Of a DNA stretch of 64,000 bases, positions 37,734 through 58,800 are shown piece after piece (the stretch's first letter is position 1; every line of letters begins with the position of its first letter). Position numbers and translations under genes: made by a program. The notes under the pieces are model-generated. The model was not told where the DNA came from, searched no databases, and worked only from the letters and a program-made list of their open reading frames with translations. Origin of the DNA: Vitrella brassicaformis CCMP3155 (Eukaryota > Protista > Chromerida); the NCBI GenBank assembly GCA_001179505.1, contig CDMY01000277.1:1-64000 (forward strand), in the 5' to 3' direction.

Positions 37734-40700
37734 TCAATTCCCGATTGCCTCCTGGACGGCAATGGACGATTCAAGCACCTCCTCGCGCCACAGCGCCATA
37801 GCTACCCAGAAGAAGACGATCAAGACTCCAAACACTGACACCAGCGATGCGCAGAAGAAAAAACTCCTCATCTGCATACCCACACAAAGACAAATACATA
37901 CATACAGCACCAACACATGCCCATCGCTGCCGCAAACACACATGTGCGGCCGGATACGTGCCCAGGTCCTCTCTGCTCTTGTCGTACCCTCTCCAGTCCT
38001 TTGCGCTTTTCTTCGTCCTTCTCGTGGCGAAGACGAATGTACGTATACAAAAGCCCTATATGAGACACACACAACAACGGACGGACACACGCATGCGTCG
38101 GTATGTCTGATGTCACTGCTATGTGTTGGCAGCGAACCAGGGATGTCACAGCAGCAGGCCGCAAGGGGCAGAATGCAGCGAGCGCAGCCGCGCGACCAGC
38201 CATACAAGCACTTCAGACTGCAGGCAAACCACACTCAAAGACAAGCGAATCGACATTTGTGCCTCAGTGTAGGGGTTGTGTACATACATGCGACCGCCGT
38301 CAACGCCAGGGGGGAGAACGCACAGCTCTCTCCTAAATTGGCCACTGCGTGAGGCGCGGAGGATGGGGCCAACGATGCCGAGGAAGAAGACGGCACCGAC
38401 GGTGATGTAGATGATGCCGACAATGCACAAGGCCCTCTAAAACCACACCCCAAGGCCCAAGACGTACATATCGACGGCAAAACACTCACTTACCCATCCA
38501 CTTACCTCGTACGGCCCTGAGACGTAGGGCAGGTAGAGGAGGCCGATGAAGGGCACCGTCACCAGGAACGCAATCATGTATGCCCAGGCGACGCAGACAA
38601 AGATTCGATGGGGCACCGAGTCGCCCTGTAGTGCTTTCTTCTGCCCGCAACAATGCACAGCAGAAGAAGAGATCTCCACGGCTGTCTGGTTCTTACAATC
38701 GCAATTTGTAGGCGGTAAGCTCGGAGAAGCAAAGAGATCTGGAGACCCTCTCAGAGCCAAAATGAAAGAGACATACGTGTATTGTCAGTGCCTGTTGCAC
38801 CTCGAAAACCCAGGAACGTGACAGTCCAGGGCTGGAGAAGAACTCCGCAAAGAACTCGAGCATCACCTTTTCCTGATCGACGGCACAGACGGACAGAGAA
38901 AAAAGTCAGCTCTTTGTCTGTCTCGAGAGGTGAGGCACCTGATCGCCATGGAATTCCTTAAGCGCGCCGTCTACATCGTGCACCCATTAAGAATGGGGAA
39001 GCATGATTCCACACTAATTTTTCCACGCATACTTACTGAGGCTGTTGACCAGCTCGGACGCAAACCAGATGCTGATGGTGAGCGCACTAACCGACAGAGA
39101 CACAGAGCATGCATTCATGAAGCTGAGCTGCTCGTCTCGTTTCGCGTGCGTACATGTCGAAGGCAGCCGAGCGGAAGGGCGACTCGTCGTCGAAGGGCAC
39201 ATACAGCAGCGGCAGCACCGACGTGACTGTAGTGAATATGACGGTCACCTTCACACCCGTCGGCCAACGGTACCGGTTAGAGGATTCTGTTGCCCGCTTC
39301 TTGGCTTCATCCACACGCAGTCTCCACACCAAGCAGATCAGCAATACGAGGGGAAGCGTAACCGTACCATCCCGCTGCTGAACTTCTCGTGCCAGGCCTT
39401 CTTGAGCTGTAGGCTGCTGCACTGTGTCTCCTCCTCTCTGGTCCTTGGAGCCGTCGGCGTCCCTGTCCTGGGCTCCCGCCGTATCGGCTTGCGCCTTCTC
39501 CTTTTCTTCCTTTTCCTTCTTGTCTCTGGCCAGCCTCTCCTCGACTGCAAGTTAAATGTGTGTGAGACAAGGACGGAGCATAGCTACTTGATATGTGACA
39601 TATCTGTTTCAATGTGGTATTCTCGCTTAGCGTTGATCGTCACCAGAAATTCCAGGAGTCCGACTGATCCGAGAATACGCAACAGGTCCAGGACAGCCTC
39701 TTTCGGTCGTGAGTCTTCCTCCATCTGTTGCTGCGCCGTCTTTGTTGTTTTGTCCGCCCTTTTCTTGGCCCCTCCTGCTTGCTTGTCCCCCTGCCCCTTT
39801 TTGTCTTTTTGTCTATTTCGCCCGGTCAGCTTCGCATCCTCTCCCGGCATTCCGCTTATGTGTCCTGCTGCTGTTTTGGTTGCTGGCTCTTCCTTGATGT
39901 CGTCTTTGTCTTCATCTTGTTGGTGAACACGAATGTCGCTCAGTCCAACGCCGCAAGACTCGTCTTCACGGCGTTCAACGTCTTCACGGTCTCCAATTTG
40001 CTCCCCTTCTGGCGCTCCGCTTCCGCCTGCTTCGGCAGGTGGGGCCTTGGATTGCTCTTGGCTGTCTTTCTTTTCCGGTCGTGTATCTTTCATGCACTGC
40101 GACGAGCAGCGAAAGTAGTTCTTCAGGGGAAGCCAAATCGCAAGGGATTGAATGGCCAATGCCGCGCCGAAGAAAATTGAGTGATATCCGACACCCGCCG
40201 AACCAAAAGCCCTGCATTCATCGACGTAATCACACTCTGCATTGTGTGCATTGGGCGGTGCGAGTATCTTACGTGAGCCCAAAGAGGAGACCGAATTGCG
40301 AGAGTTCCATGAAGGTGAGCCAAGCCTTCTTTCTATTCTCGCCAATCCAGGCACGGCAGCCGGCAAGCATGCGTCTGCATGAAAGCTTCCCCTCGTCCTC
40401 CTCAAGGAGATCCTCAATGATGCCGCTGGCCAGGGCGTGGACAAAGAAGACGGCAAAGAGACCCAATGTGTGCCACACGTCACCCTCATCCACAACGAGA
40501 ATGGCCCATATGTCCTGCAGGGTGTGATGTAATGCGATTGACCGCACTGCAGGGTGTGATGTCACTTTCCTCTTTCTCACCTCTGCCAACGTCAAAGCAC
40601 TGATGAACAGCCCGATGTTAAATTCTGCGTTGCACCACTCCATGTGCAAACCAGGCAGAACGACAGCGGCCAAAAAGACGAAGAGGAGCATGGCGCCGAC

Positions 40701-43574
40701 GATGCAGAGGATCACAATCGACAGGATCATGTCAAAGTCGAAGCCGCACTTAGGGCAGATCAGCTGGAACCAAGTGGGCTTGGGCTCTGGCGGGGGCGGG
40801 GGCGGCTCCTGGTCGGCTTCGTAGCTGTCAAGGATAAAAGTCTCGTTCTCGATTGAGCCCATGGCATTGGGCATGTTAAGGATAGTGACTACCAATACGA
40901 TGGAACAGAAAACACTCTCACTCATCGACGCAGTCGACACCTGAGATTATTCACCTGAGATGTTGGCAGTGATGTTGATCATTACGGTGGCTTCGCGGTA
41001 TCTCCACGGATTATGGTCGTCATCTTTGGTGAACCGATAAGAAATATTTCTTCTCAGCTTGGAAAATCCATTGATCTCAGGGAACGCTGAGAGATCTATT
41101 ATATCCCAGGCAAAGTTGACGAGGTGGACACGGCCGGAAATCTTGGAAAGCACGCTGTACACCAATAAGAAACACGTATAGGGAAAAAAAGAAGGACCTT
41201 CACTTACAATGTGTCAGCGTAATTGGACCCGTCCTCGAGCACTGAGACACAAAAAAAGCACGACATCCAGCAATTGAATCAACTGAATCAGTCTGCGCAC
41301 CCACCATCATCACCACCTCCACTGACGAAGGTATCACCGCCCCCACCTCCATAGAGGACATTGGCCTCTGAGTTCCCCATCAGAACGTCCCCACCTGTTG
41401 TCGAGCCCGTCAGCGCGTCGATCAATGTGTCTTCGGGGAGGGTCATAACTTTTGGATACTGCGACTGTGAGCAGCTGATCTCATTAGCCGACTCGAGAGA
41501 GACTGTGCAGTTTGCGGCCGCATCAAAGGGGTCGGAATCGTTCACCTTCTCAATCGCCACTTGATTGGTGTTTATGAGGGATGAAAGATCCTGCCCAATC
41601 CAAAAGTTCCGCGGCAGGAGCTGAGTAGGTTTGATATGGCGCATCTCGATTGTGTGCTCTTGGTCCAGGGCGATCTCTGTGATGGGAATGTCGCCATCGG
41701 CTTTCTCGGTCATGAGAGACATGATTGAGCTGGGTGTGTTGACGTCTGGAAATGCCCTAAGGTCCAAGATGTCAGGATAGAATCCCCTCCACCCGTAGCG
41801 TTCAGTTGAGTTCAGCCATAGGTCGGGGCTGAATTCGCTAATTTCGAGGTGGCTGGTCGTGCCCGGCGTGCGTAAGAAGACAAAGGTGTCACGCGATACA
41901 GAACCATATCGCCGTTCTTCGTCATTGCCTCCAAACAGGTGGTGTCTTCCGCCGGCTGCTTGTATGTAATCCGGGTCTGTGCCTCCTTTGATAATGCAGC
42001 TGACGCAGTCAGAGTGGAAGGACCTCAAGTCGTTGTAGCCCGTTCCTCGATAGCCACTTGCCTTGAGTACCGTCAAAGCTCCTAGGCCTTCGATCCAGAT
42101 GTTTGGGAGGTATGTGTGAATGACATCCGCATAGTCCGTGCCGATCACTTTTGCGATGGTGCTGTTTGCGTGGACGATAATGCGCTTCCCATTCTTAGCG
42201 GATGAACAGTCCAGCACCAAGACTTGTCCGGGCGGTGGGGACCAGTCCGTAGGGACTGCCGTAGTAGAGACAGCAGCTGTAGTGGACACGTCATTTGTGG
42301 TGGGCTCCTCTGTCGACGAACTACTGCTACTGCTGGACCCTGAAGAGCAAATATAAGAAAAGCCAATGAGACATGCGCAAGCTTTATTGCGTGTGCAGCA
42401 CACTCACCATCGTCTGACGTAGTCGGCTCTTCTGTTGTTGTGACCGAAGGTGCGCCAGTGGGCGATGAATCTTCATATTGTAGCTCACAGCCTTCCGTGC
42501 CGTCGTCCCCGAGCACTAAGTCAGAGATGTCCTCAAGTTCCAGTGTCCTATCAATGATCATCATCACTAGCTCGGATGCTGAGAGGCAATTGAGAGACGG
42601 ATCATGCCAGAGGATTCCGTTGCACATGAATGTGTCACGTACGCAGAGATCCAAATCTGAATCTGAACTTTGCCCGAGCGAGCTCGTTCGGTAGCACGTC
42701 CTTGATGCAAAGCCAGTCGGCATTATCGAGCTGCATCGTGGTGTCTGTGAGATTATCCGTAAGAAGGGGCTCAACAGCAGACCACTGGAAGAGTGCATAG
42801 AAGGCCCCGACGTCGATGAAGTCTCCGGAAGCGGGCATCATGTCATATATTGTGTTAAATGACCCGTTCACGCTGCGGGCTGGTATAAACTTATCTGTCT
42901 CACTATCGTTGCCGCCGACGAGGACATTCTGCGGTCCTCCAGACGGGTAAAGCCAATCGGCTCCTTCCCCACCGTCGAGTTGGCACCGAAGGTGGTACGA
43001 CAGCTTGCAATAGAGAGAGTCGGTTCCGTTGAGTCCATCCAATCGAATGTCCGAGACATAAGTGAGTACATCAAATCACACATTCTTTGCTTATCCGTCG
43101 GTTCTTGATAGTCTGTCTTGCCTTCTGATTTCGTCGTTAAAGTTGGTCCCTTGCACTCTGTTGATTGGGCACTTCCTACCTTGGTAATCAGTCTCCCTCA
43201 TGTTATATCCCGGCCTCCGGTGGATGCGAGGGAGCAATTCAAGGTGAGTTTGTCGGGTTCATCTCCCTCATCCACGACGCAGCCCTCCAATCGATCACCC
43301 TCGACTCCATAATCATTCTCAATATCCACACATTTATTATAGAGCAGGTCCGCAAGAGAAACATTTGCTGCTGAGGCACAGCATTGAAAGCAAACACATC
43401 ACACATGTGCTTCTGAATCACATCCATGATGATATGTCGCTTACACGACGTGAGAAGGCGGATGCTGCTCGAATCGTTGACAGGTGCCTTGGCATTGCCA
43501 GATGGATGGATTGCAAAGTAGGAAAGGCACAGGATAAGACACTGCAAGACCAAAGACCAGAAGAGGCCGGCCAT
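37734..43574 (-). CDS. RTX-like Ca-binding repeat + polytopic membrane protein, copy A (no FG-GAP; 5' lesions, possibly pseudogene)
   Basis: Signal peptide MAGLFWSLVLQCLILCLSYFA. RTX-like LDGGEGADWL and YGGGGGDTFVSGGGDD. About 10 TM segments collinear with copy B. In-frame TGA at 43198-43200 followed by a frameshift. Confidence 0.65.
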
Positions 43575-43589
43575 GCTGCCCCCTCCCGC

Positions 43590-43815
43590 AGCTCGCATAG
43601 GCCCCCGCCCGCCCCCCAGTCTCTCCCGCGGCGCCCGTCGCCGGGAGGCCGTGGAACCTCGGCGTTGCCGCACTCGATATCGTCCCGCTCGTATTCTTGT
43701 ACGTCGGTATGCAAGAATCGAGCGGGACGGCATCTGAATGCCATCAATGTGTGCGTTGTGTGCAGCGCTGGAGTCCGAGAAATGGGCGCTTTCTGAGCTG
43801 GGCTCCGTCAGGGAT
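43590..43815 (+). pseudogene. 5' fragment (promoter + exon 1) of the P membrane-gene family, start codon lost
   Basis: gctcgcataggccccc...GGG AGG CCG TGG AAC CTC GGC GTT GCC GCA CTC GAT ATC GTC CCG CTC aligns with the P1/P2 starts, with ATG replaced by GGG. It then breaks into CCT3 upstream sequence. Confidence 0.8.
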
Positions 43816-43895
43816 TCAACCTTGGAGTGTCGGAGACGGGGGGAGGGGGCGAGTTGCTAAAGCTCGCGTACTTGACAGAAGAAGATCTGAACACG

Positions 43896-44893
43896 ATGAT
43901 ACGGCCGCAGGCTGCTCCTGTAGTCGTGCTGCGGCAGAACACCAAACGCGAGCAGGGACGGAAGGCCCAGCTGGCGAACATACAGGCAAGCGACGCCCAG
44001 CTGCATGCCGTTGGATAGATCTGCACACGCACATGACCCTTGCTGTGTGTACGTCAGGCTGGCAAGACGATAGCTGACATTGTGCGTACGACACTCGGCC
44101 CGAAGTCGATGCTCAAGATGCTTCTGGACCCCATGGGCGGCATCGTCATGACCAACGACGAGAGCGCCATGCTCAGAGAGGTACGGGTGGCACACGCAAA
44201 GATGCGTAGATGCCGCACTCGTCATTGCCTTTCTCTGTTGCGGTGTGATTTGCAGGTTGACGTGGCTCACCCCGCCGCCAAGTCGATGATAGAGCTGAGC
44301 CGCTCGCAGGACGAGGAAGTGGGAGACGGAACGACCTCAGTGGTCGTCCTCGCCGGTACGCATATATACATCCACACACCCACTCATGTGCCCATAAGTG
44401 ACGCCCATACGGTGGTGGTGGTGGTGCGCGCATGTGTCGTTGTTCAGGCGAGATTTTGGCTGTGGCCGAGCACTTTTTGGGTCGCAACATGCACCCCACA
44501 ATCATCGTGGCGGGATACATCCAGGTCACCAGACGGACGACGGGATTGTAAGACTCGTTTCGACACATCGTGGCCATCTCATTGCCTTGCTGTGTGTCAG
44601 GCTTTGGATGACGCGTTGAAGATCCTCAGCGAGATCGCCACGCCCATCGATGCTTCCGACGACAAGCGATTCACCGAGATCGTCCACACATGTACACACC
44701 CACACAACCACACAACCACATCCACACATTCGCGAGACCGACACGCGACTGGGTCTGTGTGCCGTTGTGTGGGTCAGGCATCGACACTAAGTTTTCCGCC
44801 CGTTGGGGCAACATGATCAGCGACTTGGCTGTCAAGGCCGCCAAGTGCGTCACGATCGAGCTGCCTAATGGCAAGAGGGAAATCGACATCAAG
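43896..44893 (+). pseudogene. CCT3: 5'-only duplicate of CCT3 (first ~5 exons)
   Basis: Near-identical exons and introns to 55806-56796, ending at [15 protein letters not shown] is changed to TNDESAMLRE. No downstream CCT3 exons. Confidence 0.88.
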
Positions 44894-45834
44894 GTGAAGC
44901 AGCCAGCAGCCGTTCGGTGATTGAGGGAGCTGCGGAATCAAGCGACGGACGGAGCTGACCCTTTCAGATAGATACCTTCAGCGTGTATCGAGTGCCTGCA
45001 CCTACCGGCCTGGCCGAGCGGCAGCTCTGCATGCATCAAGCGAGCATCAGGCGGAATAGCACAACGAGGTCTGGTGGAGAGATGGGTGCTCACCACTATG
45101 GCAAGGCAGCCGGCTGAAGGGCAGAATGGATGGATGGATGGATGGATGGGATGGAGTAGGGAGAGGAGCGCAACACACGGACGGACGGCTTGATTGATTG
45201 AGACAGGCCGAGTTGACTGAGCTGCGTGGAGCGAGTGACTGACCGTCAGCCCGGCGGCAAGTTCGGTCATGGCCAACAACGGCCGTCTGCACGGCCCTGA
45301 CAAGCAGACAGAGATGGACGGTTAGCTAGTTACCTACGAGTGGCAGTGGGTGGGCGAGTGGAGGAGAATTACTGAGGCATAGAGTTGTGGTGGAAATGGC
45401 TGGCTGCAGTCCTATGTAGGGCGAGGGCAAGACCAGCACAGGAATGATATTACTGGGTGATTGTGCGTACGGATGGTGTGCCTGTGTGCTGTCCGGTGGT
45501 CATGATGATGGGTGCGTGGTTTATATGTAGTTTGTGTGTATGTATAGGACGTGGGTAGGAAGAGGTGTGTGTGTGTGTGTGTGTTAGAAAGGTTGAGCAT
45601 GACGAGAAGCTTGCGTCCATTGCACGCAGAGTGACCTAACACGCCAATGGACACAGAAATGCGCCAAGATGGCTCCATTCACATCAACCTCACCTACCGT
45701 CCACTGCAAGACACACACACACAGACACACAAGCAGGAATGAACGCCGTGCACTCGTCCCTCGCCTATCCCCTCGTTCGATGAGGAAGTCAGTGTTGGCC
45801 TGCTGCAACTCCTCGCTCCACCGCAGGATACACA

Positions 45835-47564: not shown

Positions 47565-47879
47565 GCATGTGAGGCTGTGTCTCAAGGGCTTTCCCACCAA
47601 GGACGTTCAACAGCTCGGTGAAGATATAGTAGCAAGTATTCCAGCTAGAGTGTAAGACCGGAGGAATGCAGAGTGCTCTGCATGTTATTCATCGGCAAAT
47701 TGAATGGCCTTTCCGACTGAGTGAAGAATAGACAACGGATTGGCTTGTACCCAGCCCAATAGCATTAGTCGCAGACACCCTCATACAGAAAGGCCACTAA
47801 GGAAAACGGACTAAATGATGTACAAACACCAAAGTGTCCGACTGCACTGCCGTGTCGTTTTGAACAGACTGAAAAACTA

Positions 47880-50800
47880 TCAGTCTCCGACTATCTGCTC
47901 GACGGCAATGGACGATTCAACTATCACGTCTCGCCACAATAACATGGCCAACCACAAGAGGAGGATCAAGGCTGCAATCACTGATATCAGCGACGCGCAG
48001 AAGAAAAAACCCTTCATCTGCACGATACGTGCGTAGCTGAATGAACACACATACAATTGAAGCACATTCGTGTTTGCTGACCTTTTCGAGGCCTTTGTGC
48101 TTTTCTTCATCCTTCTCGCGACGCAGGCGAAGGAATGTGTACAGAAGCCCTGCACCGAAACAGTTGCACGGCCCATCAGCACACACACACACACACACAC
48201 ACAAAACTGAAGAAGTCTGACAGTGGGTCCTTTTGATCTCGGGAACGCACCCGGAACGTCACAGCAGAGAGCTGCTACGGGCAGAATGATACGAGCCCAG
48301 ATTTCCGAGCACGCATACAGGCACATGAGGCTGCAAAACATATGCGAAGGGATGGGCTGTATGTCTGGCACTGTCTGCTGTGTTCATGTGCGCATACATT
48401 GGATCAAAGGGAACACCATCGGAGGGAAGACAAATATCGGGCTGGCTGCAGAGGTCTGCATTGGGTCTGAATTTGTCCATATAACGTTTGTCCAGACGTG
48501 AGGCTCGAAGGACGGGGCCAACGATGCCGAGGAAGACAACACTGCCGACGGTGATGTAGATGAGGCCAACGATGCACAGGGCCCTCTCATACCTGCGGAG
48601 CATTCATGTCGCAAGACATCTTGAAATTTCTGTCTACTTCTATCCATACATACGGCCTGGTTGCAGAGGGCAGGTAGAGGAGGCCGATTAAGGGCACCGT
48701 CAGCAGGAACAAGGTCATGTATGCCCAGGCGACGGAGACAAAGATTCGATGGGGCACCGAATCGCCCTCCAAAGCCTTCTTCTGCGGAGGGGACAACAAC
48801 ACGGATAATATGCACATAGGAGAGACATGCCTGCCATCTGTACTCACGATTGCCTTTTGGAATCGGAGTGATCGAAGGAGCACTGAAATCTGGAGACACT
48901 CTCGGAGAGAGACATATGTGCATTGACCATTCATCACTGTTCTTGCACCTCGGGAATCCCGGTATCTCTGAGCGATTGTTGGCGAAAGAATTCCATAAAG
49001 ATTCCGAGCATCACTTTTTCCTGAGACAAAAAAATCAGCTCCTTGTGTGTCTCGACTCGTCAGGTACCTTATCGCCATGGAACTCCTCGAGTGAATTGTT
49101 GAGACTGCCGACTGCCACACAAGACACCACGATGTCGTGTCTCCCTTCAACGTGTCTCCCTTCAACGCGTGCGCGCATTTGCGTGTCTCGCTCACCCATG
49201 TCTGATGCGAATCAGATGCTGATGGTGAAGGCACTGATCGACAGATGCAGAGTGCTGTGCTCCTTGCCCATTGCTCATGATGCGTGTGAAAAAAAGTATG
49301 CATACATGTCAAAGCCAGTGGATCGGAAGGGGGACTCATCGTTGAAGAACACATAGAGAAGCGGCAAGGCCGAAGTGACAATAGTGAACACAGCGGTCAC
49401 CAGCACACCCGTCGGCCACCGGTAACGTTTAGAAGATTCGTTTGCCATCTTTTCAGCGTCATCTTCACGTAGCCTCCACACCTCATCAATCAGTCGACGA
49501 ACAGTAAAATTGGCCGATTGCTCAGCGCCGCTCGAAGCATCCAGCTCCCGTTCTTCCTCTTTCTTCTTGTCGCTAGCCTCCTTCTCCCCATCTGTAAGTG
49601 AAGATTGCTCCGCACCGTGTCTAGCTCTCGAGGCATCGCGCTGGTTCTTATTCTTCTTGTCTCTGGCCTTCTTCTCCTTGGCTGCAGTTTAAATAGTGTG
49701 GGAAAGGTCGACGGAGCATTGATTGTCGATATGCACTGGCATACCCGTTTCCAGCTGGTATTCTACTCGTCGAAGCTTCTCGTCCTTGTCTTTCACTCTG
49801 TTGATCGTCACGAGCAAATCCAAGACTGGGCCTCGTTCTAAAACACGGAACAGCATCTCTTTTGCGCCTTCCGGCTGCTTGTCTTTCTCCTCCTTCTCTG
49901 CCGTCTTTGTCGTTTGCCCCTCTTTCTCCTCAGCTCCTCCTACTGTCCTCTTGAAGATGTTGCTCAGCGCAGTGCTCTTTCTCGCCGACCCGACTTCTTG
50001 TCCTGCGGCCGCTTTGGCTTGGGGTTTCTCCTCCTTCTCACTGTCCTTTCCGCGTCTTGCCGCTTGTGCACGGCCGAAGCAGATCAGTAGCACCGACCGC
50101 CAAATCGCAAGGACCTGCACGTCCTGATTCTTGCCTTTCGTGCACTGCGACATGCAGCTAAAGTAGTCTTTGAGAGGCAACCAAATCGCGAGGACCTGCA
50201 CGGAGACTGCCGCCAGGAAGAAGATAGAGTGAGACCCAAAGCCAGCCGAGCCGAAGAGTCTACATGAGCCAATGAGTCCATTCATGTGTGATTTGAGGGT
50301 GCGCATCGAAGAACACAAGTATCTTACGTGAGTCCAAACAGGAGACCGAACTGGGTGAGCTCCATGAGAGTAAGGAGAACCTTTTTCTTGTTATCGGACA
50401 ACCAGGCGCAGCAGCCGGCGAAGAAGCAGTTGAGGGATATCTTGCCTGTGTCCTCCTCACAGAGATCCTCAATGACGCCGCTGACCAGAGCGTGAAGGGT
50501 GAAGATGGCAAAGAGACCCAATGTTCGCCAAATGTCACCCTGCAATGATCCCAAACATATGTGTAGACAAGAAATGACATTCTTTTCACGCCATGTACCT
50601 CATCGACTACAAGAATGGCCACTATGTCCTGCACGGTGCACATATGCAATGAGCTTGGTGACCGATGTTGTGTGTGTCTCTGTGTGTTTCTCCCTCGGTA
50701 TCACCTCTGCCGGCGTCAAAAGACTTATGAGCAGGCCGATGTTGAACTCGCAGTCGCACCACTTCCACTTGTCGTTTGAGAGACATACAGTTGAACAGAA

Positions 50801-53800
50801 GAGGAAGAAGAGTAGAGCGCTAACGACGCACATGGCCAGAATTGACATAAAGATGAAGTCGATGCCGCACTCGCGTTGTTTGCCGATTGGCTCGAATGGA
50901 TTGCAGACGGGCTTGGGCGGGGGCGGGGGTGGCTTGTAGAGGAAGAACATGTCACTTTTGAGATCACTCGGTGTCATGCCAAGGATAGTGACTGTTGGCA
51001 GCAACAGAACATCCGACCATCAGCTCAATCAGCTGCTTCATGAAAGCACCTTCGTTCACCTGTGTGGTTGGCGGCATGTTGATGATTACGCTGCCTTCGC
51101 TGACCATTGTCACCAGAGTCGTGAACTCGTTGATCTTCCGAAATGCAGAGAGATCGATTTTATCATGGAGTCGTCTGTTGGCAACGATGATATGGCCAGG
51201 AACGTTCGAAATCGCGCTGTATGCAGACACGCGCACGCGCACACCACACACAGAGCATGACTGATACGTATGTTTTTGCTTACAATGTGGATGCGCCATC
51301 GTATCCCCCCTCGAGCACTGCAAGTCAACAGAGACACGGCTTCAAGTCTGTCTCAGATTGAATTTGAAGCAGTGCATACACCTACCATCATCACCGCCTC
51401 CAGTGATAAGCATGTCTCGTCCGCTAGTCTCATTGAAATCGCCTCCTCCCCACCCTCTCAGTATGTTCCCCTTGGAATTCCCCGTCAGAATGTCCCCGCC
51501 TGCTCTCGAGCCGGTCAGCGCATCGATCACTGTGTCTTTGGGAAGGGACATGACTTTCGGATACTGCGACTGTGAGCAGCTGCTCTCATTCATCGATTCA
51601 AGCCGGACCACACAATTTGCATCCACATCATCAGGATCGTCGTCATTCACCTTCTCGATCACCACTGAGTTGGTTGCCATAAGCGATAGAACGTTCTGCC
51701 CCATCCAAAAGTTCCGCGGCAGGAGCCGAGCAGGTGTAATATTGCGGATCTCAATTGTGTGCTCGTCGTCGAGGGCGATCTCTGTGATGGGAATGTCGCC
51801 ATCGGCCTTCTCGGTCATGCGAGACGTAATTGAGCTGGGTGTCTTGACGTCTGGAAATGCCCTAAGGTCCAAGATGTCAGGATAGAAGCCACTCTCAGCA
51901 GATGAATTCAGCCATAAATCGGGGCTGAATTCGCTAATTTCGAGGTGGCTGGTCGTGCCCGGCGTGCGTAAGAAGACAAAGGTGTCACGCGATACAGAAC
52001 CAGATCGCCGTTCTTTGTCATTGCCTCCAGACAGGTAATGTCTCCCTCCGGCTGCTTGCATGTAATCCGGGTCTGTGCCTCCTTTGATGGTGCAGCTGAC
52101 GCAGTCAGAGTGAAAGGACCTCAAGTCGTTGTAATAGGCTCCTTCTGACGCTTCGAGGCCTTCGATCCAGATCTTTGGGACGTGTGTGTGAATAACGTCC
52201 GCAAAATCCGTTCCGATCACTTTTGCGATGGTGCTGTTTGGGTGGATGATGATGCGCTTTCCATGATCTGATGCGGAGGAACAGTCCAGCACCACGACTT
52301 GTCCGGGCGGTGGGGACCAGTCCGTAGGGACTGCCGTAGTAGAGACAGCAGCTGTGGTTGGATTCCCTAATGAGACACATAGTCAAAGAGATGCAAAAGA
52401 GCTGCGACACAGACATTCACTCACCATCACCTCCAGCTGCAAGCTCTTGCAAAGCTGCCGGCAAGCTCGTCGTAGTCGGCTCTTCCGTAGTGATATCAGG
52501 AGTGGAGGCGAAAATCTGAGGTGCGCCAGTAGTCGGTGAGTCCTCAGATCGAAGCTCGCAGCCTTTCGTGCCATCCTCATTGAGGACAAAGTCAGAGATG
52601 TCCTCAAGTTCCAAAGTCTTATCGATAATCATCATCACTAGCTCGGATGCTGAGAGGCAATTGAGAGACGGATCATGCCAGAGGATTCCGTTGCATATTG
52701 ATGTGTCAAGACGTACGGAGAGGTGCAAGGCTGAAGTTTGCTTCGGAGAGCTCGTTCGGCAGCACGCTTTTGATGCAAAGCAAGTTGTCTTCACCGAGCT
52801 GCATCGTGGTGTCTGTGGCATCTTCAGTCAGAAGAGACTCAACAGCAGACCATTCGAAGAAAGCGTAGAAGGCAGAGACGCTGATCACGTCGCCGGAGAC
52901 AGGCGTCATGTCCATGGTTGTGGAAGACGTCGTGTTGCCGCTGCGTCTCAGGTAAAAGGTATCGGCGTTAGTGTCGTTGCCGCCGAAGAGAACATTGTGC
53001 GGGCCTCCAGAAGGATAGAGGCTGTCAGCTCCTTCCCCACCATCGAGTTGACACCGGACGTGATATGATAGCATGCACCGAAGAGAGTCGCTTCCATCGA
53101 GTCCCTCCAGCTGGGTATCCGAGACATAGCTGAGTACATCAAATCATGCATTCTTAGTTATCATCAGTCGGCTCTTTTTGGCCTGTCTCTTGCCTGGTAT
53201 CTCGTCGTCAAAGTTGGTCCCCTGCACTCTGTTGATTGGGCAGCCCTCCCAAATCGTTATGCGCCTGCCGCCGGTCGATGCGAGAGAGCAATTCAAGGTG
53301 AGTTTGTCAATTCCATCTCCCTCCTCCAAGACGCAGCCCTCCAAAGGATGTCCCTCTGATCTATCGTTAATTGCCACCGTCAGATTTCCATTCGGTAACA
53401 GTATCAGAAGAGAATCGTTGGCCGCTGAGACACAGCAATATAAGATAGCGCATCATATGTGTCTTGCTGTTGCTTACACCACTGGGGGGCCCAATCGCTG
53501 CTGCCGAAGACTACGTATGCACCCATGGCGGCATCGTCGTCGCCCGACACGAAAGCGTTTTTCATGGAATTGGTAGAGATGATGATATCAGAGACACCAT
53601 CCCCTGCAGCCACACAGGGGAACTAATCAATGCACGGCAGTGGCTTAATGACGCTGGTCTCCTTTGCTGACCGTTGAAGTCGCCTCGACCGATTGGGTTG
53701 CCGAGATAGGAGCCTGATGGCCGTTGCGTGTTCTCAATTTTGACTCCCCGATAGATATCCATTGCCTCTGGATCGAATGACTCCCCAAAAATATTGCCGC

Positions 53801-55566
53801 AGCACCCAAAGGTCATATTAGCTCTTCCCCAGATGCCGCAGCATCCGTGGATTACATAAACTCTCCCTCTGGTACTGTCATACCTCGAATCAGACACCAA
53901 GAGGTCAGGGATTGTATCGCCGTTGAAGTCGCCGGCATCGATGATGCCAATCCAATCAGACATGTTTCCTCCCGGTCGAATCTCCGTCCCAAATGTCTCA
54001 GCGTCGCTCCAGTGGATGTCCCTCAGATAGCTGAAGTCGGTCACGCCGTCACCTGTAACATCACTAATGGCCCCGACGCGAATATCTTGCCGGAATTGGG
54101 GGCTTAAGGCAGAAGATCCTCCTTGTGCCGAAGTGACATTGTTCAGGTCCGCACATTTGACATCGCTCTCGTTGATGTATTTGGAAAAGTCCTCATATGA
54201 GAGCCTCCAATGTTGCTTCTTCACGTAAGGCTCCCGAATGAGTATCTCGCTCTTGCCGTCCGAGTTGAGGTCTCCGATGGGCCAGCCGAATAGCGACACA
54301 TGCGCGCGACGCGAGTCAGGATGTCTTATCATGTGTCTGGCATCGTACTTTTCCGCTCCTTCGAGATCAAAGGCGGAGCAGATCACATCAAAATGGGGCA
54401 CTTGGCTGTCAGTCGAGTACAAGTCCAGGATGCCATTGAAGCTAGCCGGCAGATACGACATTGGTCCGCCTGAACATCCACAAGTGCAAGTGATGGCCTG
54501 ACTTATACTATCGTCATGTCTCATCTATCGTACCATAAAGCACGACCACATTCATGTTATATCCACTCAGCACCACATCATTATAGCCATCCCCATTAAT
54601 GTCGCCCCTGAACAAGGGTAGTGAGACAGCAATTTGTTTGTGTGTCTGTGTGTGTTCTCTCTCTCTCTCTCTCTCTTTCTTCTTCTGCTGACCCTTGGCT
54701 TGGCTGACAGTAGCGAGCGTCCGATTCGGGATTGTTATAGCGAATGCGAAAGCCATTCGTGCCGTCCATCGAGGCCAGATCGATATCGATCGCTGGCGCC
54801 CTTGCTTGCCATGTTCGGTCGCCGAAGACAACATAGCATTGCCACCTGATAGTTGCTGAACAGCGTCTTAAAATGATTGCTGCAGACTCATGTGCTTTCG
54901 CTCCCTCACTGTGCGAGTGGGCTCCGCCGATAGCGAAATCAGGTACCCCATCGCCTGCATGCAGAAAGAAATACAATGTGTATGGCCTTCATTCACAGAC
55001 AGACGTAGCGATTACCGTTGAAGTCGCCCAGCCCTTTAAGGCTCCATCCAATGTTTTCTTCATCGCCATCAGGGGCGCGAGTAGAATCGAAGAAGCGGAC
55101 ACCTTCACTGAGGATCACAGAAGACAGACTCTCATACTTCTTTGCAGACAGCACGTTGCGACCATGCTTACGATCCGAGTGTATATTTTGGTGCACCAAA
55201 CGGTTTATCTCCTTGCCGTCCAAAAATCAAGTAGACAACACCTCTCGTTTCTGCCGGGTACTTTTTGCCGGGGTCGGAGATGAGAATGTCATCGATGCCG
55301 TCATTATTCACGTCGCCAATGAAGTCTGCTATGCCCAACGAAGCCGTACTGTAAGAATATGAGGATCCTCCCGTTGCTCGACGGATGACGAACCCTCCTG
55401 AGCCGTCCAGGTCGTACACATCTATGGTGTTGGCCGGCTCTTCAAGACGCCGGACGCTGCTGGCATAATGATTGTCGACCAGGTTGTCGATGGCCTGAAA
55501 TGGATGAATTGCAAGAAGGAAAAGAAGGACCAGCGAAGCCCAAAAGAGGCCGCCGACCAATGGCAT
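47880..55566 (-). CDS. FG-GAP (integrin-alpha-like) + RTX/hemolysin-type Ca-binding repeats + ~10-TM membrane domain, copy B
   Basis: Signal peptide MPLVGGLFWASLVLLFLLA. FG-GAP repeats: IGDVNNDGIDDILISDP...GVVYLIFG, LGDFNG|DGVPDFAIG, GDINGDGYNDVV, GDLNSDGKSEILI, SDVTGDGVTD, AGDFNGDTIPDLLV...GRVYVIHG, GDFNG|DGVSDIII. RTX motifs LDGGEGADSL and TGGGDD|VLEGG. TM domain collinear with copy A. Two frame anomalies at splice donors. Confidence 0.8.
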
Positions 55567-55805
55567 GTTTCCTGATCATGAGGCACAGCATGAGAAGCAG
55601 ACACACAACACATGTGCTTCACGTCCATGATCATGTGTTGCTCACACGACTTGAGGCGGCGATGCTGCTCGAATCGTTGGAAGCTGCGCAAGCACTGCCA
55701 GATGGATGGGCGAATCAGGCACGTATTGGGACAGCCGCGAGACTGGGGGCAGAGGGGGGCGAGTTGCCAAAGCTCGCGCACTTGACAGAAGAAGATCTGA
55801 ACACG

Positions 55806-58800
55806 ATGATACGGCCGCAGGCTGCTCCTGTGGTTGTGCTTCGGCAGAACACCAAACGCGAGCAGGGACGGAAGGCCCAGCTGGCGAACATACAGGCAAG
55901 CGTCGCCCAGCTGCATGCCGTTGAATAGACCTGCACATGCACATGCGCCTTGCTGTGTGTACGTCAGGCTGGCAAGACGATAGCTGACATTGTGCGCACG
56001 ACCCTCGGCCCGAAGTCGATGCTCAAGATGCTTCTGGACCCCATGGGCGGCATCGTCATGACCAACGACGGCAACGCCATACTCAGGGAGGTACGGGTGG
56101 CCCCGACGCACGCAAAGACGCGTAGATGCCGCACATGTCATTGCCTTTGTCTGTTGCTGTGTGCTGTCTAGGTTGATGTGGCTCACCCCGCCGCCAAGTC
56201 GATGATAGAGCTGAGCCGCTCGCAGGACGAGGAAGTGGGAGACGGAACGACCTCAGTGGTCGTCCTCGCAGGTACGCAGATAGACATGCACACACGCATT
56301 CATGCGCCCACAAGTGATGCCCATACGGCGGTGGTGGTGGTGGTGTTGTGCAGGTGAGATGTTGGCTGTGGCCGAGCCCTTCCTCGAGCGCAACATGCAC
56401 CCCACAATCATCGTGGCGGGCTACATACAGGTCAGCGGAGGAACGACGGAATTGTAAGACTCGTTTGGACACACTGCCGCCCTGTTGCCTTGGTGTGTGT
56501 CAGGCTTTGGATGACGCGTTGAAGATCCTCAGCGAGATCGCCACGCCCATCGATGCTTCCGACGACAAGCGACTCACCGAGATCGTCCACACATGTAAAC
56601 ACCCACACAACCACACAACCACATCCACACACTCGCCAGACCGACATGGATCTGGGTGTGTCTGCCGGTGTGTGTGTCAGGCATCGACACCAAGTTTTCC
56701 GCCCGTTGGGGCAACATGATCAGCGACTTGGCTGTCAAGGCCGCCAAGTGCGTCACGATCGAGCTGCCTAATGGCAAGAAGGAAATCGACATCAAGGTCG
56801 GCCAGCCAGCCAGCCAGCCACTTATCCAAACGGACATGAGCAACACACGCATGTCTTTGATTGATGCATCGATTGGTCAGCGTTACGCCAAGGTGGAGAA
56901 GATCCCCGGAGGCGACTTCGATGAATGCGGTCAGGGAGGGAGATAGAGAAGGCAGGCAGTCGTCACAACAGCTGCACTGACTGCTTTTGTGCGTGTTTGT
57001 CTGTTGTATGCATACAGCTGTGTTGAACGGTGTGATGTTAAACAAGGACGTAACGCACCCCAAGATGAGGCGCATCATCAAAAACCCAAAGGTGGGCACA
57101 CATTGATCAATGAATGGATGGATGGATACTGGACGGCTTCCTGTGTCAGGTGGTACTGCTCGACTGCAATCTCGAGTACAAGAAGGGTACACACACCACC
57201 GGACAGACGGACGGACGCTTGGCGACACAATGCTCTCTCCTTGTGTGTGTGTGTGTGTGTGTGTGTGTTGTGGATTAGGTGAGAGTCAGACCAACGTGGA
57301 GGTCATGAAGGAGGAGGACTGGGAAGCGCTACTCAAGGAGGTCTGTCTGCATGCCGAGCACACACGCAGCCATCCTCGATGTCAATCTGTCTGTGTGCCG
57401 TCATGTCAGGAGGAGGAGGAGATTCAGAAGATGTGCAACGACATCATCAATGTCGGGGCCGACCTCGTCTTCACCGAAAAGGGTACACATGAAAGACCGC
57501 GGCCATCCCGCCTCGTTGCTAGCACAATCTGTGTTGGGTGTGTTGTGTGTGTGTAGGTGTGTCGGACCTGGCGCAGCACTTTCTGATGAAGAAGAACATA
57601 TCGGTCATCAGGCGAGTGCGCAAGACAGACAACAACAGACTCGCCAGAGTGGTCAGCACTAACACCCACCCACCCACACACACAGAGAGAGAGAAAGGTA
57701 TGCATGAGGGTGATGTGGATGCAGACGGGTGCGCACATAGTGAATCGGACGGACGAGCTGACGGCCGACAACGTGGGCACTTTGGCGAGGCTGTTCAAGA
57801 TCGACAAGATAGGCGACGAGTACTACTGCTACATCACCGAGTGCGACAACCCCAAGGCATGCACCATACTCATGAGGGGCGCATCCAAAGACGTACTCAA
57901 CGAAATCGAAAGGTATCTCACACACTGAGAGAGGGAACGGCCATTTCCCGTGCCACGTATGTGCACACAAAGGCCTCTCTGTGTGTGTGTCTGTGTGTGT
58001 TTAGGAATTTGCAAGATGCGTTGAACGTCGCCCGCAACGTGTTGGTGGAGTCCAAGCTGCTGCCCGGGGGCGGCGCCACAGAGATGGAAATCGCCGCCAG
58101 GCTCAACGAAAAGGCGAAAAGTAAGCCTTCACATGAGATGCGCGAGGCGAAGAGTGTAGTGTGCACGCGCTGTGTTGTGCTATGGGTGTCTGCAGGCATA
58201 GAGGGCATCAAGCAGTGGCCATACAAAGCCGTGGCTGTGGGTCTCGAGGTACAGCAAGGCAGCGTCCACCGAACGAACACACGCGACACACGCATGTTGT
58301 CTACACAATCAGGTCATTCCCAGGACGCTCGCTCAGAACTGTGGGGCTGACGTCGGTGAGCCGACACACATGAGGGAGAGGAGGAGATGAACCCATCGGG
58401 TCTGTGTGTATGGTTGTGTCGCATGGATGCAGTTCGCACCATCACCGACCTGCGGTCCCGCCACGCCCTGGCCGGGGAGGGCAGGTTCTGGGGCATCGAC
58501 GGAAACACTGGTAGGTCACACAGACAGACAGACAGCCGACCAGCGACCGAAACGCAGTGTATTTGGCCGTGACTGACTGGGTGTGTGTGTTACGATGTGT
58601 GTGTGTGTGCAGGCAAGGTTGTGAATGTGGAGCAGGCGGGTATCTGGGACGCATACGCCGTCAAGCAACAAGTCATCAAGACCGCCATCGAAGCGGTCAG
58701 TGAGAGCCACAACACCCACATAGCAGAGGAAGCTTAATTTCATGCAAGCTGAGATGAGAGTGCTGCTGCTTTGGTGTTGTGCATGAAGGCTGCGATGATC

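Follow-up and report, generated by a model that had tools for sequence, protein, structure and literature searches.

The window analysed here comprises 64,000 nucleotides of contig CDMY01000277.1 of Vitrella brassicaformis CCMP3155, a free-living relative of apicomplexan parasites whose source assembly amounts to 72.7 Mb in 1064 scaffolds. A sequence-only reading had proposed that one spliced open reading frame in this window encodes a chimeric surface receptor, in which a bacterial-type, putatively horizontally acquired ectodomain made of an FG-GAP propeller and RTX cassettes is grafted onto an orphan polytopic membrane domain. This locus thus raises the question of whether such a protein is, or ever was, encoded here, and to which known families its parts are related.

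Gene Structure and Transcription

The gene is located on the minus strand and runs from an ATG at 55566 to 47880, with the modules arranged in the order signal peptide, seven FG-GAP blades, three RTX modules of the serralysin/AlgE type, poly-Pro stalk and approximately 10–11 hydrophobic helices (Table 1). A spliced RNA-derived contig of 3552 nt (run X6) spans positions 47800–51744, with 15 GT..AG introns among the joints listed; a 16th intron (51318–51385) was deduced from the public model P0001 together with a contig piece whose first base is 51386. This single spliced contig, reaching from the cassette 2 exon to the 3' end, places cassettes and multipass part on one transcript, which speaks against ectodomain and membrane domain being separate genes, an outcome that would have undone the proposed fusion. 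Nor is the locus silent, as mRNA was detected in runs of two studies. Of the single transcript postulated for 55566–47880, the portion from cassette 2 to the 3' end is hence backed by RNA, whereas the 5' junctions above 53799 are predicted from the sequence. Reading frames were followed exon by exon, using RNA-derived junctions and, 5' of 53130, canonical predicted ones; minimum-intron path searches gave wrong gene models, and homology-forced, hand-checked junctions were used instead. When P0002 and the cassette and propeller exons served as queries in word-index protein searches, conducted within a length window that hides long relatives, nothing came up beyond the public models of the locus itself and two weakly matching FG-GAP proteins.

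Table 1. Coordinates of the gene modules, frame breaks and tandem paralogue in the 64,000-nt window.
Feature	Position	Strand	Basis
Signal peptide and seven-blade FG-GAP propeller	53478..55566	-	Pfam, Ca-loop motifs, predicted in-frame GT-AG introns
Propeller exons	55566-55172, 55107-55016, 54954-54910, 54855-54693, 54607-54534, 54469-53672, 53603-53478	-	predicted junctions
Exon with N-terminal part of cassette 1	53194..53424	-	frame tracking
Frame break 0: 1-nt deletion, 5 nt before donor	about 53199/53198	-	three-way DNA alignment with copies B and C609
GC-AG intron after exon 53194-53424	53193-53130	-	acceptor 53130/53129 fixed by RNA contig piece ending at 53129
Cassette 1 main exon: RTX-like nonapeptides (GGEGADSLY...), DTFYL, GDVISVSAF, cap ending in NFSL	52717..53129	-	profile match
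Acidic, Thr-rich linker exon	52425..52649	-	mapped from P0001; GT-AG introns on both sides
Cassette 2 (DTFVF, PDILDLRAF) and first half of cassette 3 (GGDILTGNSKGNIL...GGGDD)	51386..52330	-	homology
Rest of cassette 3 (HDKIDLSAF): exons 51317-51284 and 51216-51060	51060..51317	-	RNA joints 51216/51284 and 50991/51060
Frame break 1: 1-nt deletion relative to B and C609	51076/51075	-	alignment and frames
Stalk, poly-Pro (50932-50915), anchor TM1 (about 50872-50774) and multipass start (WCDCEFNIGL...), one exon	50705..50991	-	RNA joints, hydropathy
Orphan multipass module, 13 further exons	47883..50704	-	RNA joints, hydropathy
Frame break 2: in-frame TGA inside hydrophobic segment	49214-49212	-	TGG (Trp) in B, C616 and C263
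Terminal stop codon TGA, conserved frame	47880..47882	-	sequence
Tandem paralogue B: signal peptide exon, no FG-GAP exons, cassettes, multipass module	37734..43574	-	colinearity with present copy (A)

An Integrin-like Propeller

The N-terminal modules turned out largely as anticipated. A hydrophobic, signal-like N-terminus begins at ATG 55566, consistent with the claimed signal peptide, and the roughly seven claimed FG-GAP repeats correspond to seven DxNxDGxxD-like motifs in the in-frame exon model, predicted to form Ca loops and sufficient in number to close a propeller. Pfam PF01839 (FG-GAP) reached 41.7 bits (cut-off 22.1; E = 1e-10) on the 320-aa exon 54469–53672, with weaker Pfam matches on two further exons. 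All predicted propeller introns are GT-AG and in frame, two of the seven Ca loops being split by introns at the identical point (GDFN/G/DG, split sites marked by slashes), and the whole module has a colinear paralogue at C718:275158–277244, after which no cassette or multipass-module match follows.

In a PDB search, blades of integrin alpha-V (E = 3e-4), alpha-X and alpha-M were the best solved relatives of the propeller, in a database biased towards animal integrin alpha. Both proteins share seven FG-GAP repeats with DxNxDGxxD Ca loops, but the present propeller is followed by RTX modules, whereas integrin alpha proper has thigh/calf leg domains, a single transmembrane helix and a conserved cytoplasmic motif. 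Pfam returned no integrin-leg family on any piece, and no GFFKR-type tail was seen by eye. An integrin alpha subunit proper was rejected, as FG-GAP was the sole Pfam family matched on any exon and RTX cassettes come after the propeller.

RTX Modules of the Serralysin/AlgE Type

All three cassettes that had been described as GGxGxD-type motifs followed by DxF and D.IDL.AF could be assigned to exons, each consisting of GGxGxD-like nonapeptides, then DxF, then D.I(D/S)(L/V).AF; the Thr-rich linker and the poly-Pro run are present as well. Cassette 1 is homologous to cassette 2, the pair aligning over 134 columns in hhalign with E = 1.7e-7. A cassette 1 profile built from three copies matched the RTX domain of Erwinia protease C (PrtC, residues 361–449; 90 aligned residues, E = 5e-4), RTX proteins accounting for 15 of the 16 chains listed. 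Among NCBIfam models, EglC matched the cassette 1 main exon (E = 2.4e-4), serralysin and SMc04171 the cassette 2/3 exon (E about 1e-4), and over copies A and B the serralysin, SMc04171, EglC and ZapA models gave E = 1e-4 to 1e-3; the AlgE4/AlgE6 R-modules in the PDB aligned to the cassette 2/3 exon at E = 0.15–0.45. This exon (query residues 119–334) further matched the C240 paralogue (E = 9.7e-9), whose cassette-3-like part passes the Pfam family HemolysinCabind with 29.2 bits versus a cut-off of 23. The present copy did not pass this family (PF00353; 7.2 bits versus 23, E = 6.9, on P0001), so that the suggested HMMER-type family check succeeded for FG-GAP but fell short for the hemolysin-type repeat. 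An AlphaFold2 model of P0001, built from a six-sequence alignment with paralogue rows, was unusable (mean pLDDT 34).

Judged by these profile matches, the cassettes are RTX-type modules of the serralysin/AlgE R-module kind, with which they share a short GGxGxDxUx run, DTFVF, (D)xIDLSAF and a beta cap. Unlike in those proteins, the unit occurs three times with degenerate repeats, in a eukaryotic gene that contains introns, encodes a signal peptide and lacks a protease or epimerase domain as well as a type-I secretion context. The view that D.IDL.AF represents a type-I secretion signal had to be abandoned, since in the alignment the motif falls within the body of the C-terminal RTX domain of serralysin (PrtC 361–449). 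A type-I secretion substrate was likewise rejected: the cassettes are internal, thrice repeated and align to the RTX body rather than the tail, and the gene is split by introns and encodes a signal peptide at the N-terminus.

Some bacterial proteins combine an FG-GAP-type propeller with hemolysin-type calcium-binding (RTX) repeats. The present gene resembles them in this pairing of propeller-type with RTX repeats, but a pattern scan of the genomes of 185,579 prokaryotic species, which distant kin could escape, recovered no bacterial relative of cassette 1. We found no paper linking Vitrella brassicaformis with FG-GAP; the papers found to join FG-GAP, RTX and eukaryotes were unrelated to the present architecture, and the Vitrella genome paper leaves propeller and RTX domains unmentioned.

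Fusion to an Orphan Multipass Module

The 13 exons after the anchor exon add approximately 9–10 hydrophobic segments and a loop, rich in K/E, of some 200–250 aa; overall, hydropathy gives ~10–11 segments with long K/E-rich loops, in good agreement with the ~10 helices and large charged loops noted before. Both ends of exon 50991–50705 are set by RNA joints, and the anchor-plus-module exon arrangement recurs in copies B and C609. The fusion of the ectodomain to the multipass module is genuine, because the anchor and the first conserved multipass helix share this RNA-confirmed exon and the modules also have separate paralogues. On this point, the idea of an ectodomain grafted onto an orphan module has stood up well.

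The earlier suggestion of an adhesion-GPCR-like receptor or a channel fared differently. No membrane exon nor P0002 had a match in Pfam or NCBIfam, a PDB profile search with the membrane part gave E values of 0.99 or worse, and Atlas offered no family with a score high enough to be useful. When the first third of the module was run as a profile against 1.84e9 proteins, two matches emerged, both from Vitrella, and none outside it. The Atlas model of P0002 reached a pLDDT of 0.44, rendering its structural neighbours meaningless, and we attach no evidential value to the proteins that a language model placed near the membrane part, whose scores did not exceed 0.84 and which included an isolated XK-related lead at 0.79. 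The likeness to adhesion GPCRs and polycystin-1-like receptors is one of layout only, a big modular ectodomain on a polytopic part, whereas no 7tm_2, GPS/GAIN, PKD or ion-channel match was obtained here and the helices number ~11.

Sister Copies and Paralogues of Single Modules

The tandem copy B is colinear with copy A save for A's segment 53356–55579. At its 5' side, alignment alone indicates damage in the form of a 17-nt insertion (43195–43179), a TGA (43200–43198) and an acceptor changed from CAG to CAC (43064–43062); from 42403 in cassette 2 to its stop at 37734, copy B remains open across 15 homologous GT-AG introns. Contig C609 carries a third copy, in a badly decayed state. The GCAAGA donor of the GC-AG intron in cassette 1 is common to A and B, whereas C609 has GTGAGA. 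Paralogues of the multipass module were found in C263, C512 and C616 besides B and C609, and in P0003 the module comes after a Pkinase domain (E = 1.4e-35). The reverse situation is met in C240, which resembles the present gene in its propeller (FG-GAP_2, seven matches), Thr/Pro linker, RTX module with HDVLDL-type cap and one membrane helix, and in C520, where the likeness covers the RTX-to-anchor part. In both, the single anchor is followed by no more than a short or plain tail, whereas A, B and C609 continue into the ten-helix module.

Three Frame Breaks in the Present Copy

Exon-by-exon phase tracking revealed that the frame, assumed to be one spliced ORF, is broken three times. At break 0, exon 53424–53194 ends in phase 1 and exon 53129–52717 requires phase 2, a mismatch caused by the 1-nt deletion relative to B and C609, and a stop follows near 52951. 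No GT or GC donor of the required phase occurs nearby; the donor in use is predicted here, and six RNA joints lie outside those listed. At break 1, the deletion throws exon 50991–50705 out of frame: after the RNA-supported 68-nt intron the frame reads SLSLA and then encounters TGA 50976–50974; the homologous intron of B measures 66 nt and is in frame. An alternative donor, GT 51049, would mend the frame through an in-frame intron of 58 nt, which was not seen in the RNA contig. Splicing around the TGA of break 2 is impossible without shifting the frame, and decoding of TGA as Trp was rejected, copies A and B both terminating with TGA.

Comparison with two or three paralogues in each case marks all three lesions as derived. 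At the lesions they cover, the RNA and DNA contigs are free of base differences; they come from one strain and probably from the assembly's own data. Both ends of the public models P0001 (521 aa) and P0002 (475 aa) fall at or between the breaks, P0002 ending at TGA 49214–49212. The dN/dS ratio between A and B is about 0.33–0.35 for the cassettes and the membrane module, the latter with 0.33 both before and after the TGA, giving no sign of relaxed selection after disablement in this comparison.

Discussion

We consider the locus, more likely than not, to be a young pseudogene: a transcribed, correctly spliced copy, with a broken frame, of a fused surface-protein gene. As judged from this copy and its paralogues, the product of the ancestral gene would have begun with a signal peptide and an FG-GAP propeller of seven blades, continuing with three RTX beta-roll-plus-cap modules, a Pro-rich stalk and a membrane anchor. 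This ectodomain plus anchor may have constituted an integrin-alpha-like, probably Ca-dependent adhesin of presumed type-I topology, of which single-anchor relatives persist in the genome (C240, C520). The anchor would then have been joined, within one exon, to the orphan module of about ten helices, which elsewhere exists without such an ectodomain or behind a protein kinase domain. Two single-base deletions and a TGG-to-TGA change have split the frame into four pieces, of which the first alone, of ~700 codons, would be translatable from the mRNA start; comprising the signal peptide, the propeller, the start of cassette 1 and 59 out-of-frame codons, it would yield at most a secreted propeller fragment. 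Copy B, with its single frame from cassette 2 to the stop and all homologous introns preserved, is in line with a recently disabled A. The young-pseudogene reading has to accommodate the readily detected mRNA, although a target of nonsense-mediated decay is to be expected, as well as the potential of GT 51049 to mend break 1 and the unrelaxed dN/dS beyond the lesions. The latter fits only a very recent inactivation: with about 0.33 before and after the TGA, decay would have to be recent.

Could the full chimeric receptor, a protein of ~1970 residues that unites propeller, RTX modules and some 11 membrane helices, be made nevertheless, with the breaks bypassed by alternative splicing or readthrough, or being assembly errors? 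Cassettes and membrane module on the same transcript, a conserved frame that remains open for nine exons past the TGA and through cassettes 1–3, the dN/dS of about 0.33 throughout and the in-frame 58-nt intron from GT 51049 would be compatible with this. We nonetheless regard it as highly unlikely, since three independent rescues would be required: the RNA contig uses the conserved 68-nt intron rather than the 58-nt one, a right-phase donor is absent at break 0, splicing past the TGA shifts the frame, the gene's own terminator is also TGA, and the contigs show no differing bases at covered lesions. Still less credible, and very improbable in our estimate, is a set of independent genes with their own starts, namely one gene for the propeller, another (P0001) for a 'calcium-binding protein' and a third (P0002) for an uncharacterised membrane protein. 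The two public models do cover exactly these stretches, but a single spliced contig spans the territory of both; P0001 begins in the middle of cassette 1 and without a signal peptide, P0002 begins just past the frameshift and ends at an in-helix TGA where paralogues have Trp, and the same stretches form one open frame in copy B.

A remodelled shorter gene, encoding a secreted FG-GAP propeller protein with the remainder serving as a long, intron-rich 3' untranslated region, strikes us as unlikely but deserves consideration. Its frame, which opens at ATG 55566, closes at a stop near 52951 and includes signal peptide and seven blades, is intact, the C718 propeller likewise stands without cassettes or multipass module, and mRNA occurs in the runs of both studies. 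However, this frame ends with 59 out-of-frame codons in cassette 1, which looks accidental, and a stop with more than 20 introns after it normally triggers mRNA decay.

Returning to the family to which this young pseudogene would belong, a farther-reaching interpretation, decidedly unlikely at present, is that in Vitrella a novel type of modular membrane receptor has arisen, in which the orphan ten-helix module takes varied N-terminal inputs and of which at least one member works. One subfamily would receive the extracellular propeller-RTX adhesin by way of an additional anchor helix, another a cytoplasmic kinase; working candidates might be copy B from an internal start or the present copy via frame rescue.

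The practical weight of the present copy is modest because it is probably non-functional. It does call for caution in annotation, as neither 'chimeric receptor' nor the public three-gene annotation fits one transcript with three fresh lesions. The orphan module, also found behind a kinase, gives structural and functional studies a defined target. Beyond this, Vitrella has surface proteins built from integrin-like propeller and RTX modules, one of them fused in-exon to a lineage-restricted multipass module, and it is such domain shuffling that is thought to underlie the surface-protein repertoires of apicomplexans.

Results

The minus-strand open frames of copy A, the surface-protein gene under study, carry the parts that the sequence-only reading had named. 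Its FG-GAP propeller is confirmed: a 320-aa open frame scored 41.7 bits against a Pfam cut-off of 22.1 (E = 1e-10), two other pieces gave weaker FG-GAP matches, and an exon model of the 5' third, restricted to GT-AG introns of 53–85 nt with the frame kept, gives a hydrophobic N-terminus followed by seven blades that all carry a DxNxDGxxD-like loop. The junctions in this third are modelled ones, as RNA contigs were mapped on 47800–53799 only. The best solved relatives of the propeller are animal integrin alpha chains, which the solved structures strongly over-represent.

The cassettes and the membrane part of copy A gave no Pfam match. Cassettes 1 and 2 are homologous to each other (hhalign probability 93.8%, E = 1.7e-7, 134 columns). 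Compared alone with the PDB, P0001, a public protein model spanning cassettes 1–3, gave weak matches, all to RTX proteins (AlgE4/AlgE6 R-modules, protease C, serralysin, CyaA), and NCBIfam returned serralysin, SMc04171, EglC and ZapA for copies A and B at E values of 1e-4 to 1e-3. A cassette 1 profile made from three copies matched residues 361–449 of Erwinia protease C (E = 5e-4); the alignment begins at the last nonapeptides, takes in DKIDLSAF and continues into the strands beyond. Together with a relative on contig C240 that passes Pfam, this profile match supports homology of the cassettes to the RTX beta-roll-plus-cap unit. Judged by the protease C alignment, the D.IDL.AF motif is a part of this unit and not the signal for type-I secretion. 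As to the bacterial ancestry that the sequence-only reading had proposed, a cassette 1 pattern scan of prokaryotic genomes found no relative.

By hydropathy, the C-terminal membrane module comprises an anchor, about ten further hydrophobic segments and a K/E-rich loop of ~200–250 residues. It gave no identifying signal in Pfam, NCBIfam, PDB or Atlas, and a profile of its first third retrieved two matches from 1.84 billion representative proteins, the public models P0002 and P0003, both from Vitrella. One exon of the module in copy A holds a short internal repeat that the paralogues lack, and dinucleotide microsatellites lie within introns of the gene; the one at 48172–48212 was passed over as a repeat when reads were mapped.

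Coordinates of copy A, its lesions and related features in Vitrella brassicaformis CCMP3155; window = C277:1-64000
Feature	Contig	Position	Strand	Remark
Copy A	window	55566-47880	minus	
Copy B	window	43574-37734		tandem to A; colinear except A's 53356-55579 (propeller exons), absent in B
Break 0	window	~53199/53198	minus	in exon 53424-53194; next exon 53129-52717
Break 1	window	51076/51075	minus	in exon 51216-51060; next exon 50991-50705, stop at 50976-50974
Break 2	window	49214-49212	minus	in 38-nt exon 49233-49196
GC-AG intron	window	53130-53193 (A); 43115-43126 (B)		donor GCAAGA
Alternative GT donor	window	51049	minus	ten bases downstream of break 1 donor
59-nt intron of A	window	50540-50598	minus	
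Three introns of A	window	49195-49112; 49067-49021; 48948-48890	minus	
Internal repeat of A	window	50070-50240	minus	VQVLAIWLPL ... VQVLAIWRSV
Microsatellites	window	48172-48212; 54640-54685		(CA)n or (GT)n; (GA)n
TGA in copy B	window	43200-43198		within 17-nt insertion
Acceptor in copy B	window	43064-43062		CAG to CAC
Tandem duplication (~9 kb)	window	37734-44911 vs 47880-56815		
Chaperonin-gene part	window	55739-56815 vs 43833-44911		90% identical
Propeller-only paralogue (L014-L015)	C718	275158-277244	plus	
Ankyrin-like ORFs, kinase, ten-helix module (L020-L021)	C512	38500-44400	plus	
Propeller-RTX relative (L008)	C240	19560-23171		ORF 418-2148
Long ORF (L018-L019)	C263	37409-38329	minus	
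Long ORF (L015)	C718	281540-282661	plus	

Contigs of RNA run X6, and partly of run X1, skip 15 listed stretches of 47–101 nt, all 15 with GT..AG ends on the minus strand after the cut shifts stated by the tool. A single contig of 3552 nt extends from the 3' end to 51744, within the cassette 2/3 exon, so that cassettes and membrane part lie on one spliced RNA. Six further joints were detected but unlisted; their count equals that of the introns modelled between 51318 and 53671, which would be consistent with a transcript that continues as far as the final exons of the propeller. The start of the exon following break 0 was set by an RNA contig piece.

The sequence-only reading had described one spliced open reading frame. 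When the frame is followed from one exon to the next across the RNA junctions, breaks appear instead, and copy A does not encode one protein. At break 0, compared with copy B and the C609 paralogue, the exon is short of one base just ahead of a GC donor; the following exon is therefore entered in the wrong phase and a stop is reached after 59 codons. No nearby GT or GC donor in a fitting phase was found. The GC-AG intron is common to A and B, the same site in C609 reading GTGAGA. At break 1, a three-way DNA alignment identified one base missing in A and present in B and C609: the exon that ends cassette 3 (HDKIDLSAF) leads through a 68-nt intron, with conserved donor and acceptor, into an exon whose conserved frame is missed (SLSLA, then the stop), while the homologous 66-nt intron of B is in frame. 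Break 2 is an in-frame TGA where B and the paralogues on C616 and C263 have TGG, within the motif (F/L)TISIW(F/Y)AS; the conserved frames of A and B both terminate in TGA.

The signal-peptide exon of copy B runs straight into cassette 1. With introns forced at A-homologous positions, B has a single open frame from 42403 to the stop at 37734 across 15 GT-AG introns, and its 5' end, judged by alignment, looks broken, carrying a 17-nt insertion with a TGA and an altered acceptor. The 59-nt intron of A is missing in B, which reads VVDEGDVWH uninterrupted. In the third copy, on contig C609, the last blade is joined to cassette 1 and the membrane module has lost its 3' half. Several frameshifts fall within a stretch that A and B have as a single exon, and the C609 copy likewise encodes no single protein. 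The tandem segmental duplication also takes in ~1.1 kb from the 5' end of a divergently oriented chaperonin (TCP-1/CCT-like) gene, more similar between the duplicates than the surface-protein gene bodies are (67–84%).

Nei-Gojobori estimates of dN/dS between A and B were 0.35 for the cassettes and, for the membrane module, 0.34 before and 0.33 after the TGA of break 2, with identities of 73% in exons and 62% in introns. Purifying selection acted on both copies during most of the time since they separated, and the lesions must in consequence be recent.

Discussion

We consider it probable that the locus is a pseudogene of recent date which is still transcribed and belongs to an unusual family of fused genes. 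The public annotation represents it by P0001 (521 aa, UniRef name 'calcium-binding protein'), whose Met start lies inside cassette 1 just past break 0, and by P0002 (475 aa, uncharacterised), which starts with a Met just past break 1 and ends at the break 2 TGA. As these models fit between the breaks, the annotation pipeline evidently met the same breaks and split the locus into separate genes. That they are truly separate genes is very improbable in our estimation, with cassettes and membrane part joined on the 3552-nt RNA.

A rescued full-length receptor could draw on the alternative GT donor, which would create an in-frame 58-nt intron at break 1; use of this donor was absent among the RNA joints shown, and we regard such a rescue as quite unlikely. 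A secreted propeller has a precedent of layout in the C718 paralogue, which is colinear with the signal-peptide-plus-propeller module (49–71% amino-acid identity) and is followed by no cassette-like or membrane-module-like sequence in the stretch past the propeller; its likeness to A reaches into some introns. Copy A could itself be a remodelled gene of this kind, ending at the stop past break 0, although we deem this rather unlikely, and a recently inactivated member of the fused family remains the reading we prefer.

The proposed graft onto an orphan multipass module holds. In A, B and C609, a single exon contains both the anchor helix and the multipass module's first conserved helix (C.AEFNIGL...LTLAE); the fusion is thus a feature of the DNA itself and does not reflect read-through from one gene into its neighbour. 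The modules also have separate paralogues in the genome (72.7 Mb, 1064 contigs). The membrane module recurs at C263, C616 and C512, with no cassette or propeller matches on the stretches compared there. P0003, the model at C512, is one protein in which a kinase domain (Pfam Pkinase, E = 1.4e-35) leads directly into the start of the membrane module. Ankyrin-like ORFs and the protein kinase domain lie upstream of the ten-helix module at this locus, and the C616 copy has an unbroken open frame where A has three introns. Two similar long ORFs at C263 and C718, with the motifs GHL.PW.LT.L.P and ...LVIDC..ETA..., neighbour unrelated members of the families studied and probably represent a separate multicopy gene family.

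More distant cassette relatives were also found in the genome, including those on C240 and C520. The C240 ORF combines seven FG-GAP_2 repeats (E = 2.5e-29) and a linker rich in Thr and Pro with an RTX stretch scoring 29.2 bits for Pfam HemolysinCabind, above the cut-off of 23. Downstream frames add an HDVLDLTNF-containing cap and, after it, one membrane helix bearing a basic stop-transfer; from its sequence, the locus looks like an intact single-pass relative. C520 (L007) resembles it from the RTX stretch onward. The propeller-RTX type-I surface proteins of Vitrella thus form a wider family.
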